NCBI RefSeq assembly: GCF_040938485.1
Contig: NW_027270920.1
Coordinates: 1,054,001 to 1,118,000, forward strand
DNA length: 64,000 nucleotides
Direction of reading: 5' to 3'
Source of the DNA: Diadema antillarum
Lineage: Eukaryota
Made by a program: the position numbers and the translations under genes. Shown here one piece after another: positions 27,947 through 62,536 of this stretch; positions within the stretch are counted from its first letter, which is position 1, and each line of letters opens with the position of its first letter. The notes under the pieces were generated by a model. It was not told the origin of the DNA. It saw nothing but the letters and a program-made list of their open reading frames with translations, and ran no database searches.

Positions 27947-28005
27947 TATAAAAGTGGAAGAGTTTCTCTGAGTTGCCATCAGATCGCAGTCCAGAAGATC
28001 ATTTG
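27947..28005 (+). promoter_or_regulatory. TATA box, initiator and non-coding first exon of peptide gene copy 1
   Basis: TATAAAA at 27947, CCATCAGAT 29 bp later (27976), donor G|GTAAGC at 28005/28006. The same layout occurs at copy 2. Confidence 0.7.
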
Positions 28006-28750
28006 GTAAGCAGAATCAGTGTTTCTTATTACATCTTCTGTCTTTTGCTCATTTCACAATTTCATTGCGGATGGTGCAATTTATTCCTTTGTCTCAGTTT
28101 GAAATAACGACTATCAACCTTTGAATTTCAAAATTTCGTAGTTTGAAAATTCTGCAAATTTGGTTTGGTGTCGAGTTATGCTTAGCAAATGCTTAATTTC
28201 TCCATGATCTGTTTTGACTTAATAGACCATATTGTAGACAAATTGATGTTGTCATATAGTTAATGTAAAAGGGAGAAAAGGAATGAAATTTCCTAAATAT
28301 TTGAGAAAACAGCTTTGTTGTTTTTGCTTCTCGACAACGCGAGATCCTTTTGCAGATACGATATTTTGCAAGTCTTTGCAAGTAGAGTCAATTCAATCTA
28401 ATAAGCAGTGTAATGACGGACACAAAGCTGGAAGAAACACAAAATTCCCATTCAACTTGCAGACAAAACTTACAAGAGCTGAGTTGACTCCGTTTCTTTT
28501 TGTTTGGTGGTAGTTCTGCATACTCTCTCTTTTTCCCGCGGTAACCGAATAGCCTATTCCTAATGTACCGCTATGACCAAGGCCCTTTGGAATCCCACTT
28601 AGTTCGATCTGAAGAGTAATCTTATTCTTAGATAAAATTCAGTTATGCCAATGTTGTAAAGAACAAAAACAGACAACTAAGTCTTAACCCTTTCCTTCTT
28701 CTAGTTCATTCCCATCGCCAGCTGTATAAGCCAAACCCAAATCTACCACA

Positions 28751-31524
28751 ATGGCCAAGGCTCTGTTCTTCGCTCTCGCTGCCATCCTCTTCGTCGCCGC
28801 CCTGGCCGACTTCGAGGAAGAGACCCAAGGCGACATCGAGTTCCTCAAGAGGGACCCCGAGATGCAGGACTACTTCATGGCCGAGAAGAGGGGAAGGAAC
28901 ATGAAGAAGTACAAGTGTAAGCAAAACCAAGTTTAGAAGGAGTTTCGAAAAGAGAAACTGCTTGTGTCTGTATAAACAGAAGTATTTTCATTTAGTCACA
29001 ACGGGCTGAATTACCCCATTCTTTTCCAAAGTCTTCATGGCATGTCACCTGTCGACGGTAAAATGATTGAACCCGTTTTGACATAAAAAAGAGGAGCAAA
29101 CTCTTTGCATTAAAAAATGCAAGAAAGAGGAGTCCTACATTGACTTCAAGACCGCCATTTAACTGGACACTCATAGGACTCCTAACGGAAGTGAGACAAA
29201 TGTATAAAAACTTCCGAATGTTCGCATTTGATAGTGAATTAGACAATTCAGTCTTGGTGCAGTGGCAATCTGTATTCTTGGCAACACAAGGACTGACATG
29301 GACATCATTTGAATCTCTTTACTTTGCACCTGTGCTGCCAGTATCAAGAAAACAGTCAAATTCATCCTTGATAAGGTTTCTTTTCCTTCAGCACTAAAAA
29401 TCAGTAGTGTAACTATCTATTCTAAACAAATGGATCCACTTGCCTCATTGTCACGTCTTCCTGAATCTTGGACAAACAATAACAAACAAGACAGAGAGAA
29501 TTTCACGTCCATGTTGCTTCATTTATTTGCAAGGCATCTATTTGCAAAGATATTAAACGGGTTATGTTGGTTATTCCGAAGGTTTGTTAGTGAAAAAAAA
29601 GAAGAAGAAGAAGAAAGAAATAAGGTTCGTTATTTCGAAGATTCGTTGTTCCGAATATAGATATACAAGTTTCATATATACCTTGATGTTCGGTAAACCG
29701 AAAATGAAAAAGGATTCTTCAATCGAAGCATTTGTGGCGTTGTTCCGAAGGATCATCACTCCGAAGGTTCGGTAATTTAAAAATGAAATCAGGTTCGTTA
29801 ATCCGAGAATGAAATAAGGTTCGCTTTTTCGAAGGTTCGGTAATCCGAAAATGTAATCAGGTTCGTTATTCCGAAAATGAGATAATGTTCATACATCAAA
29901 AAATGAAAAGAAGGAGCGTAATAAGCACTCTTCGGAAATGCAAACCTCACTTCGTTTTCGGATTTAAGAACCTTTTGAATAAAGAACCTTATTTCATTTT
30001 CGGATTAACGAATCCTCAGAATAACAAACCTCATTTCATTCACTCGGACTTACAAACTATTGGAACAACGAATCTTCGGAATAATGAACTGTAACTATCT
30101 AAAACAACGCATTCTCTGACCTCTGATGTTCTCTGTTTTATTCCATTCCAAACAGACTGCGCCATGTTCAACCAGGACTGCTGGTGCTCAAGGAGGACCA
30201 GCAAGGTTGTCTTCTGCAACGGTGAGCCCATTAGACCATTTCGATCCTGGTCATTGTTTTTTTTTTTTCTAGTTTGACTTTCTTTAGGGAGAATTTTGAA
30301 GGTGATAACATATCGATTAATTTGCTATAACGCAGAACGACAGGTGGGGATTCCTTTTACATTCATTAAAGACGCGACATCAGAAAGAAAGTACGGTGTA
30401 TTGCCTAACGAGGAGCAGAGAAACAGAACAAACAGAAAATTAAGAGACCATGTGAATGAAATTGCATCGTCTTAAAAGACCTTTGTAACGAGACACTATC
30501 ATCATCTTCCGTCTATAGATGTCTGATAGTAAACGTGAGTGATTTTTATTACTTTACGATAATACTTTATTTCACTGAATTGGGATCATGCAGACTATTA
30601 TCTGTTGCTTTGATAATGATTATCCGTCACTTACACCTTCAGACTATACGACGGACATCTCTTATTGCGTGGATCACTTCCACCAATTTTTGTTTTTTTG
30701 TTTTTGTGGCCCCCTCTGAAACTTAGGTAGAATCCAGAACCACATCAAATTCAGAATTTGGATTTCTGTATGCATTTCTTGCTTCGTTTATTACTTCGCA
30801 AATATAATAATAATTATGATAATAATTGTAATCTTTTGATAAATGCCTGGAGAATAAGCAAGGGGCTTACCAACTTCTAGGTTGCAAACCAATGAAAAAA
30901 GGCAAATCATCTCATTAAAACAATTTAACTCACTTATGTTATCACTGTGGGCACATTTCACATGTCGAAACTCTTCCCCCCCCCCCTCCTTTAACCCTGA
31001 AGTCATTCTGTATTTGGATTCTCCAACTTGAATTCTGCAAAGCTTTGCATTTTCATAAGCGAAACAAGAACGCGATCCTCATACATCATCAGTTTTAATG
31101 TGCATTTTTTTTTTCGTTCCTTCCCACCATACAATGACCATTGAAGTTAGAAAACAAAGTGGTTTCATACAACCATGGATTTACGGCTTCACTAAAATTC
31201 AAACCTTTTGTACATTGTGTACCAGCTCTTTGCTGGGACACAGTTTATTAGATTCGGTATGGATGGATTCAAATTGCCAAACGTAATTTTCCCTTAAAAT
31301 GCCCTTTTTGTGAGACAGAAGAATGGAGATACTACGAAAGCTAGTCAGTAATCAAATTACGGTACGTCTGTGATCCAGTAGCAGAGTGAAATACGTGCTT
31401 TCACATGGTACTTACATTGTTTAAATCGGTAACTCGCCTCCTGATCATGAGGGTGACTCCAATGACTGGTCCGTCTGTTCTTTCCACAGGTGCTGGCAAC
31501 GGTGGCGACATCGCTGGACTCTAA
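28751..31524 (+). CDS. Secreted Cys-rich cationic peptide precursor, copy 1 (putative antimicrobial/defence peptide); join(28751..28916, 30156..30221, 31490..31524), 88 aa
   Basis: MAKALFFALAAILFVAALA-DFEEETQGDIEFLKR-DPEMQDYFMAEKR-GRNMKKYKYCAMFNQDCWCSRRTSKVVFCNGAGNGGDIAGL*. Canonical GT-AG phase-1 introns, AATAAA at 31746 and 31755, and paralogous exons repeated downstream. Confidence 0.9.
29559..30095. mobile_element. Interspersed repeat built of AAGGTTCGTTATTCCGAA-type motifs in inverted arrangement (MITE-like), in intron of copy 1
   Basis: Many GGTTCGTTATTCCGAA motifs in the left half and their complements (CTTCGGAATAATGAAC) in the right half. A related copy lies at 43731-44037. Confidence 0.6.
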
Positions 31525-31986
31525 ACGGGCACCCAAGCACGTGACTGATCAACTGGCTTATGATTTTGACCCTGTTCTTAGACACCGGATCCTGACGTCA
31601 CAGCAAAGTCGACCGAGCTGTTTTCTCAGATGAGACCTAGACCTCAACACGTTTTACTTCCACAATGCCGACTTTTGTAGACTATACTTTTTGAAAAATT
31701 GTGTATGAACCACGTAGACACCTGCCGACAAAGTGTTTCATACCCAATAAATGCAATAAACTCTATGTTTCTCAAGTACCTGATGTTTTAAAAGTATTTG
31801 TTACGTCCATGAATTGGAATAGATTTTGGTTGGCCTATGCCGGTATGCTTGGTTTGTAGCTAGTATGTGACATGTTAATGGATAATGACTGCCTGTGATT
31901 TGATGAGCCCCTATCTTTGCGTTGACATGAGGGTAATGATTTACTTGTGCGCGTGAGTATACTTTTAATCAGCAAGAGTGCTTCCG

Positions 31987-61902: not shown

Positions 61903-62006
61903 TATAAATTGAGGTCCGTTTCTTCGTCCGTCAACGTTCTCCAGTCGACGCGGCTGAAACCATCCCCAGAGACGCAATTTTCACCAAAGCTGATTGATTT
62001 TGCCGA
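61903..62006 (+). promoter_or_regulatory. Candidate TATA box and non-coding first exon of peptide gene copy 5
   Basis: TATAAAT at 61903, TCAAC about 29 bp downstream, donor GA|GTAAGA at 62006/62007; inferred by analogy with the other copies. Confidence 0.4.
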
Positions 62007-62367
62007 GTAAGATTTGATTACTATGCCCTCTCAATTTATCATTTTTTGACCATTTACTAGTTAATTTTGTCGTTACTACATCATCCTTGTTATTGTGTTT
62101 AGCTAGCGTTAGGAATAGAGTAAATGTTCAAGATAGCTGAATTAATTGTTTTTCATTTTATCTCCTAGATGCCGATGACATCGGTGTGGAAATGTTCAAA
62201 GATTTTGGGGTATCATACAATAGTTATTTAATCTTTGAATTTCCGTGCATCTTGAGAATGTACAGTTCAAAGTAGATATTTAATCTAATAATATCCAAAT
62301 TATATTAGTGAAAATTGCAATTTCATAGACCTTTCTTCATTCCTCTACCAGATCTGCAAACACCACC

Positions 62368-62536
62368 ATGGCCAAGTTTCTCTTTGTCGTGCTCGCTGCC
62401 GCACTCGTCGTTGCTGCGCTGGCCGAGATGGAGTTCGAAGACGAGGAGACCGACCTCGAGTTCCTCAAGAGAGACCCCGAGATGCAGGAATACTTCATGG
62501 CAGAAAAGAGGGGGAGGTCCATGAAGAAGTACAAGT
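62368..62536 (+). CDS. Secreted Cys-rich peptide precursor, copy 5, first coding exon only (remaining exons presumably beyond window end)
   Basis: MAKFLFVVLAAALVVAALAEMEFEDEETDLEFLKRDPEMQEYFMAEKRGRSMKKYK + t|GTAAGT; acceptor CCAG|ATCTG at 62351/62352. No QDCWC exon is found in 62537-64000. Confidence 0.85.

Follow-up and report, generated by a model that had tools for sequence, protein, structure and literature searches.

The closest described counterpart of the genes considered here is PpCrAMP, the cysteine-rich antimicrobial peptide of the sea star Patiria pectinifera reported by Kim et al. in 2018 (Dev Comp Immunol 86:203; UniProt A0A223G1S1), in a paper that reportedly contains also a Strongylocentrotus orthologue ('SpCrAMP') and tissue expression. 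The PpCrAMP precursor, 79 aa long, is printed in a supplementary table, the peptide was isolated as an antibacterial one with minimal inhibitory concentrations of 8-34 ug/mL given in the supplement, and the 'beta-hairpin' ascribed to it is a prediction quoted in reviews (PMC11767717). Reviews, PMC11767717 included, list few echinoderm defence peptides, namely the strongylocins, the centrocins and a few others, with PpCrAMP as the sole sea-star peptide. The present analysis concerns a stretch of 64,000 nucleotides from the sea urchin Diadema antillarum (hereafter the window; contig JBFRCO010000032.1 of assembly GCA_040938485.1, approximately positions 1,054,001-1,118,000), which carries a tandem array of genes, g1 to g5, encoding small secreted peptides with four cysteines. 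On the evidence of sequence and gene structure, these genes very probably constitute the CrAMP family's branch in echinoids. The array is best read, with a fair degree of probability, as a CrAMP-family array of secreted, convertase-processed cationic peptides of host defence against microbes. This defence role and the antibacterial action that goes with it are attributed from homology only, as the most likely function.

The array was delimited by two features of the family. A six-frame scan of the window for the motif C-x6-C-W-C-x9-C returned four copies, all on the + strand (at 30158, 40365, 44740 and 51039), and no further one. The exon encoding the signal peptide and the propiece was found in five + strand copies, at 28751, 39569, 42668, 49930 and 62368 (tblastn E-values 1e-17 to 1e-34). 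The initial annotation of this stretch had announced a cluster of five genes. Five paralogues are indeed present, but the window holds four whole genes and the first coding exon of the fifth, because exons 2 and 3 of g5 lie beyond its end. A minus-strand tblastn match at 5815-5901 was considered as a sixth copy and rejected: it is an isolated D-C-W-C, without further Cys or exon features, and is taken as a chance match.

All the genes follow the same plan of three small coding exons, joined by GT-AG introns that are both in phase 1. In g1, the first coding exon (28751-28916, + strand, 166 nt) encodes the signal peptide, an acidic propiece with an internal and a terminal KR, and the first 9 residues of the mature peptide; the second (30156-30221, 66 nt) carries all four Cys; the third (31490-31524, 35 nt) provides a Gly-rich tail and the stop codon of a product of 88 aa. 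The exons of g2 have the same lengths (39569-39734, 166 nt; 40363-40428, 66 nt; 40777-40811, 35 nt) and its product is also of 88 aa. Gene g3 is assembled from exons at 42668-42845 (178 nt), 44738-44803 (66 nt) and 45656-45681 (26 nt) into a product of 89 aa, and its D. setosum orthologue is identical at 175/178, 66/66 and 25/26 nt respectively, that is 266/270 nt of coding exons. In g4 (49930-50098, 169 nt; 51037-51102, 66 nt; 51730-51761, 32 nt; product of 88 aa), the tail does not differ from that found in P0002, its orthologue in D. setosum. The first coding exon of g5 (62368-62536, 169 nt) is followed, past the window end, by exons at the window-equivalent positions 64556-64621 (66 nt) and 66308-66333 (26 nt), all on the + strand like those of the other genes, and the 86-aa product is XP_071508362.1. 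The spliced g1 and g2 products are exactly XP_071507942.1 and XP_071507953.1, and the exon pattern x/66/26 is also present in Lytechinus pictus. These gene models are direct observations. What was proposed at the outset proves right as regards the same-strand tandem arrangement, the sizes of the exons, the origin from an echinoderm and the architecture, in which a signal peptide is followed by an anionic propiece, KR-spacer-KR, a cationic peptide with four Cys and a Gly-rich tail.

The precursors of this family begin with a signal peptide of 19-20 aa ending in A-x-A, continue with a propiece of net charge -6 to -8, and show a KR-G junction in all five genes; dibasic sites frame the spacer and precede the mature N-terminus. 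The mature parts have the length (38-41 aa) and net charge (+5 to +6) first predicted for them. Their motif needed one correction, since residue 3 is S in g5 and the position there reads [NS]. Nine residues precede Cys1 in the Diadema mature peptides, and the third coding exon encodes a Gly-rich tail of 9-12 residues. Past the core, the five precursors have neither a dibasic site nor an amidation signal at the mature C-terminus. On the basis of these features, the 86-89 aa precursor would enter the secretory pathway by means of its 19-20 aa signal peptide, to be removed after A-x-A, and the acidic propiece (net -6 to -8) would balance the charge of the cationic part until cleavage. By the usual sequence rules, an enzyme of the furin/prohormone-convertase type would cut on the C-terminal side of the terminal KR, and probably of the internal one too, releasing the peptide of 38-41 aa and net charge +5 to +6. 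For the 29-residue core of this peptide, with its four Cys, the prediction is a small beta-sheet of three strands held by two disulfides, and the Gly-rich tail encoded by its own mini-exon would come after the core. In the AlphaFold models of the g1 product and of the Patiria miniata protein alike, Cys1, C-x-C and Cys4 each mark the place of one of three strands, and the pLDDT (predicted local distance difference test) of that part is 73-79. The disulfides of PpCrAMP reportedly run C1-C3 and C2-C4.

Other peptide systems are less close. Tachyplesin, arenicin and gomesin are small cationic beta peptides with two disulfides; unlike the urchin peptides, their Cys form two nested pairs over one hairpin, without a C-x-C, and no sequence similarity was found. 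The strongylocins are likewise echinoid, secreted, cationic, Cys-rich and derived from a prepropeptide (PMC11767717), but they have six Cys in another pattern and showed no similarity in the family searches. The urchin mature part contains exactly four Cys, so that its separation from the six-Cys strongylocins and defensins, made in the initial annotation, stands. The centrocins, too, are cationic peptides of echinoid defence that a larger precursor gives rise to by cleavage (PMC11767717); they differ in having two chains, one disulfide and a largely helical structure, and no similarity to them was found.

Word-indexed and exhaustive hidden Markov model (HMM) searches with the urchin family gave matches in echinoids only, in D. 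antillarum, D. setosum, L. pictus, L. variegatus and Strongylocentrotus purpuratus, the last with LOC105437721, LOC115921203, LOC115921513, LOC115921771 and LOC105439745. Every echinoid member is filed as an 'uncharacterized protein'. Whole precursors of D. antillarum and L. pictus are 63-64% identical. In an alignment of 17 urchin sequences, nine columns do not vary, among them those of the K-x-K that precedes Cys1 and of the R that follows C-x-C. The spacer framed by KR is nearly invariant in most members. Tandem arrays are also found in D. setosum, where the order g1-g2-g3-g4 is identical, in L. pictus and in P. miniata. A subfamily of 76-78 aa lacks the internal KR and the spacer, and several more copies of it (P0043-P0048, P0055) lie outside the window, both elsewhere on this contig of D. 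antillarum and on another contig. The array therefore exceeds the five genes seen in the window, and the D. antillarum family comprises at least 10 genes. The deep search also returned weak multi-repeat matches (P0028-P0030), rejected as repeat-inflated and unrelated. Against Pfam nothing exceeded the threshold (best E-value 0.06, 13.5 bits for a cut-off of 27), and the PDB sequences, searched with a single protein and with a profile, gave no meaningful match (best E-values 0.14 and 3.2). In the open literature, no paper was found that carries the LOC numbers or the core peptide strings of the urchin genes. One further full-length and correctly spliced member, of 110 aa and nearest to S. purpuratus LOC115921513, occurs in the MERC catalogue (P0054). 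This catalogue of marine eukaryotes is built from metatranscriptomes. Its entry is the sole hint of expression and hints at planktonic stages.

The relation to sea stars emerges from a targeted comparison. A search with the PpCrAMP precursor detected P. miniata LOC119735486 and LOC119735398, which form a tandem pair, and Acanthaster planci LOC110986500. Alignment of the urchin family with the PpCrAMP precursor by hhalign gave a probability of 92% (E-value 5.6e-7), and that of the urchin profile with the sea-star profile a probability of 97% (E-value 2.8e-11). Signal peptides can inflate profile scores, and the comparison was therefore repeated without them. The score, 57-62 with the signal peptide, was then 32.6, against 10.8 +/- 2.7 (maximum 19.8) in 100 column shuffles, about 8 standard deviations above the shuffled scores; the mature part alone scored 23.4, against 9.9 +/- 2.7 in column shuffles. 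In a joint alignment of 16 urchin and sea-star sequences, the four Cys, the R of KR and the R after C-x-C are invariant. The structure of the genes agrees as well. The P. miniata gene (L005) has two coding exons, the first of 163 nt, and a phase-1 intron splits the codon before Cys1. An intron of the same phase in that codon is common to Diadema g1-g5, L. pictus, S. purpuratus and P. miniata. The initial annotation had suspected a distant relative of PpCrAMP, and the hhalign probabilities, the shuffle controls and the shared intron uphold this suspicion. Its description of the family as apparently unnamed and perhaps new is superseded, as the genes represent, very probably, the branch in echinoids of a family known since 2018 through its published prototype.

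The urchin and sea-star members have in common the succession of signal peptide, acidic propiece, KR and a cationic peptide starting with G-[RK] (or, more broadly, G-[RK/A]), the four Cys, of which the middle two form a C-x-C that precedes x-R-[RK], the phase-1 intron in the codon preceding Cys1, tandem gene pairs, and a predicted core of three beta strands (AlphaFold, one urchin and one sea-star member). They differ in several details. The N-terminal arm ahead of Cys1 is shorter in urchins, with nine residues in Diadema and 15 in Patiria. The central position is occupied by W in the majority of urchin members and by V or L in sea stars. Most urchin members possess an internal KR and a conserved propiece spacer, in which sea stars differ. 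In urchins, a further intron, also of phase 1, is followed by a third coding exon, a mini-exon for the Gly-rich tail of 9-12 residues, whereas sea-star precursors end one residue past Cys4, where the C-G of PpCrAMP is an amidation signal. The last residue of the sea-star precursors is G, R or Q, and amidation is therefore not universal even in sea stars.

Two sets of observations weigh against the reading of the array as CrAMP-type defence genes, one touching its ancestry and the other its function. As to ancestry, the HMM built from urchins only, run against 1.84 billion proteins, retrieved no sea-star protein at an E-value <= 0.001; the link between urchins and sea stars thus rests on the targeted profile comparison and on gene structure. 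The Cys spacings differ, since Diadema has 6/1/9, Patiria 8/1/10 and Acanthaster 7/1/8, and the C-G end of PpCrAMP, with its amidated C-terminus, is absent from the urchin precursors. The structure models are of moderate confidence only, and Foldseek found no fold match in the PDB (best E-value 0.66). A rival reading would make the urchin family an independent invention, its likeness to PpCrAMP being due to the convergence of short, secreted, cationic Cys peptides. The HMM search that stopped short of sea stars, the unequal spacings and the part of the profile score contributed by the signal peptide would fit such a convergence. It is nevertheless improbable, given that the score obtained without the signal peptide stays far above the column shuffles, that the intron before Cys1 has the same position and phase, and that the order of the parts, the KR-G-[RK] junction and the C-x-C-x-R-[RK] are conserved. 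In addition, the spacing in Acanthaster is intermediate, and both groups belong to one phylum.

As to function, selection on the family is directly observed. Within D. antillarum the paralogues are alike only in the exons and a few dozen flanking bases and have unalignable introns; between D. antillarum and D. setosum, orthologous introns are 82-91% identical. Among the five genes, the pairwise ratio of non-synonymous to synonymous substitution rates (dN/dS) ranges overall from 0.04 to 0.32 and lies below 1 in the signal peptide, the propiece, the core and the tail. Positive selection was considered and discarded, pairwise dN/dS never exceeding 0.64 in any region. Two D. setosum copies of the g1/g2 type are separated by 12 synonymous and 0 non-synonymous differences. 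Such strong purifying selection is more usual in signalling peptides than in fast-evolving defence peptides. Exact-protein look-ups returned genome records only, and the literature yielded nothing on the expression, the peptides or the activity of urchin members.

The tail exon deserves separate mention. Between g1 (31490-31524) and g2 (40777-40811), its synonymous sites are saturated, with 8 differences on about 9.8 sites, and a single amino-acid change is seen. Exons 1-2 of the same two genes show 3 synonymous differences on about 42 sites. This contrast could reflect either short-tract gene conversion in exons 1-2 or constrained synonymous sites. Gene conversion between g1 and g2 on the scale of the array was rejected, the orthologues differing by 4 and 10 as compared with 12-17 between paralogues; orthologues being closer than paralogues, the array has not been homogenised as a whole.

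These constraints lend some weight to the idea that the genes encode precursors resembling prohormones or neuropeptides. Convertases would cut at the two KR sites, and the disulfide-bonded ligand so released, and possibly the acidic spacer peptide of 11 residues, would then act on receptors rather than on microbes, and CrAMP ancestry would come without shared function. The possibility is retained as a minor but real one because the strong conservation, the KR-framed spacer and the selected tail suit signalling better than defence. Indeed, the nine invariant columns testify to a very high conservation across euechinoids, the identity between D. antillarum and L. pictus precursors and the low dN/dS point the same way, the spacer varies little in most members, and the tail peptide has been kept despite saturated synonymous sites. 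The 76-78 aa subfamily nevertheless manages without internal KR and spacer, so that the spacer peptide is dispensable. The absence of an amidation signal, and of a dibasic site past the core, also speaks against a hormone, as does the presence in D. antillarum of at least 10 tandem, loop-diversified genes, an unusual situation for a hormone. Moreover, the sole studied relative was purified by its antibacterial activity (PMC11767717). The reading as host-defence peptides agrees with the charge match between anionic propiece and cationic peptide, with tandem amplification, and with paralogue differences centred on the loops: the paralogues diverge chiefly in the two inter-cysteine loops. As a more speculative variant, the echinoid CrAMP branch may be a signalling precursor, similar to a cytokine or hormone and possibly giving two products, that derives from a defence peptide gene. 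The near-invariant core, the KR-framed acidic spacer and the mini-exon tail, all kept by purifying selection from Diadema to Strongylocentrotus, could be the features behind such a shift.

The spines of Diadema cause painful wounds. The peptides might accordingly be imagined as venom or deterrent toxins of the spine epidermis acting on predator ion channels, the design of signal peptide, propiece, KR and Cys peptide being common, as a general point, to many animal toxins. This is very improbable: Lytechinus, Strongylocentrotus and Patiria possess the family just as Diadema does, its conservation is not specific to one lineage, and no toxin family was matched in Pfam, the PDB sequences or the PDB folds.

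The public annotation of the array is uneven. The initial annotation had judged the exons small enough to be missed, which proves true of g3 only. Genes g1, g2 and g5 are annotated as modelled here, and g4 is annotated with a different 3' end. Gene g3 is uncalled in the D. antillarum annotation, and its intact D. setosum orthologue is likewise uncalled. For g4, NCBI gives a protein of 116 aa (XP_071508351.1) that quits exon 3 early by an internal GT and skips 8.8 kb, an N run included, to a last exon located within the open frame 60552-60656 (+ strand) and ending at 60656. The D. setosum g4 orthologue has the short form of 88 aa, with the tail of the present model, and the 116-aa form may represent a second type of transcript or an artefact of modelling. 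The N run in question (54108-54248) sits between g4 and g5: the g4 stop (51761) is 2.3 kb upstream of it and the g5 TATA box (61903) 7.7 kb downstream. There are no family exons in its vicinity and no modelled reading frame crosses it; only the 116-aa g4 variant bridges it, as an intron. Locus L004 and the window differ by 141 mismatches, which is the length of this run, and the public record therefore has letters there. Two further N runs are located at 18622-18847 and 21345-21562.

Upstream of the coding exons, putative promoter units can be recognised from motifs in the DNA. The g1 unit would consist of a TATAAAAG box at 27947-27954 together with a short non-coding 5' exon, both within 27947-28005 (+ strand), followed by a GTAAG donor at 28006. 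Position 27947, at which the initial annotation began the cluster, is base 1 of this box, and the donor comes 59 nt further on. The g2 unit, at 39062-39120 (+), has a TATAAAAG box and a candidate exon of the same type with a GTGAG donor at 39121. The g1 and g2 units can be aligned, and the distance from TATA to donor is 59 nt in both. For g4, a TATAAATA box and a putative 5' non-coding exon occupy 48942-49022 (+), with a GTAAG donor at 49023 and a distance of 81 nt; for g5, a TATAAATT box and a comparable exon would extend over 61903-62006 (+), with a GTAAG donor at 62007 and a distance of 104 nt. The S. purpuratus model LOC105437721 has an extra exon, which precedes the one with the ATG by about 0.9 kb. 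From these TATA-donor units and this upstream exon, a short 5' non-coding exon is inferred for each gene, which would thus be read from a TATA promoter through this exon to the three small coding exons.

The DNA around the genes resembles ordinary echinoid intergenic and intronic sequence. The window has a G+C content of 37% and contains no open reading frame longer than 140 aa; the Rfam search gave no RNA family match within it, and no broken genes or viral elements were met. A 273-bp satellite occupies 694-2577, with 6.8 tandem copies and 89% matches, and accounts for the fact that the first 4 kb have a raised G+C content, of 41-45%, and a GC skew of +0.19. In the spacer between g1 and g2, a 158-bp unit is repeated in tandem 4.9 times (32996-33744). 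A dispersed repeat is found at 45159-45467 and 54853-55227, with 71% identity over about 370 nt and internal units of 20/40/60 nt; one copy is in g3 intron 2, upstream of exon 3, and the other lies about 0.6 kb past the N run that separates g4 from g5. Direct and inverted repeats of 42-68 nt in g1 intron 1 (29613-30040) recur in g3 intron 1 (43843-44036) and probably represent a small mobile or foldback element. Microsatellites of CA, TG and AT occur at 39954-40019, 41202-41255 and 42422-42535, within a few hundred bases of family exons, and an (AT)57 run stands directly upstream of the g3 start codon.

The array is not a new kind of system. As far as could be checked, the Diadema array, its synteny in D. 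setosum, the shared intron, the tail exon of urchins and g3 are undescribed, even if ordinary in kind. With them, the PpCrAMP family would grow from one sea-star peptide to a gene family common to asteroids and echinoids, with a large, conserved and tandemly arrayed urchin branch that has its own third coding exon. Its definition would gain an intron position, the C-x-C-x-R-[RK] signature and the KR-G junction. Should the echinoid branch prove to signal, a family of antimicrobial peptides would have been co-opted for signalling, or the reverse. Diadema antillarum has been hit by mass mortality from infectious disease, and a catalogue of its candidate immune effectors, including the unannotated g3, is for this reason of practical use.

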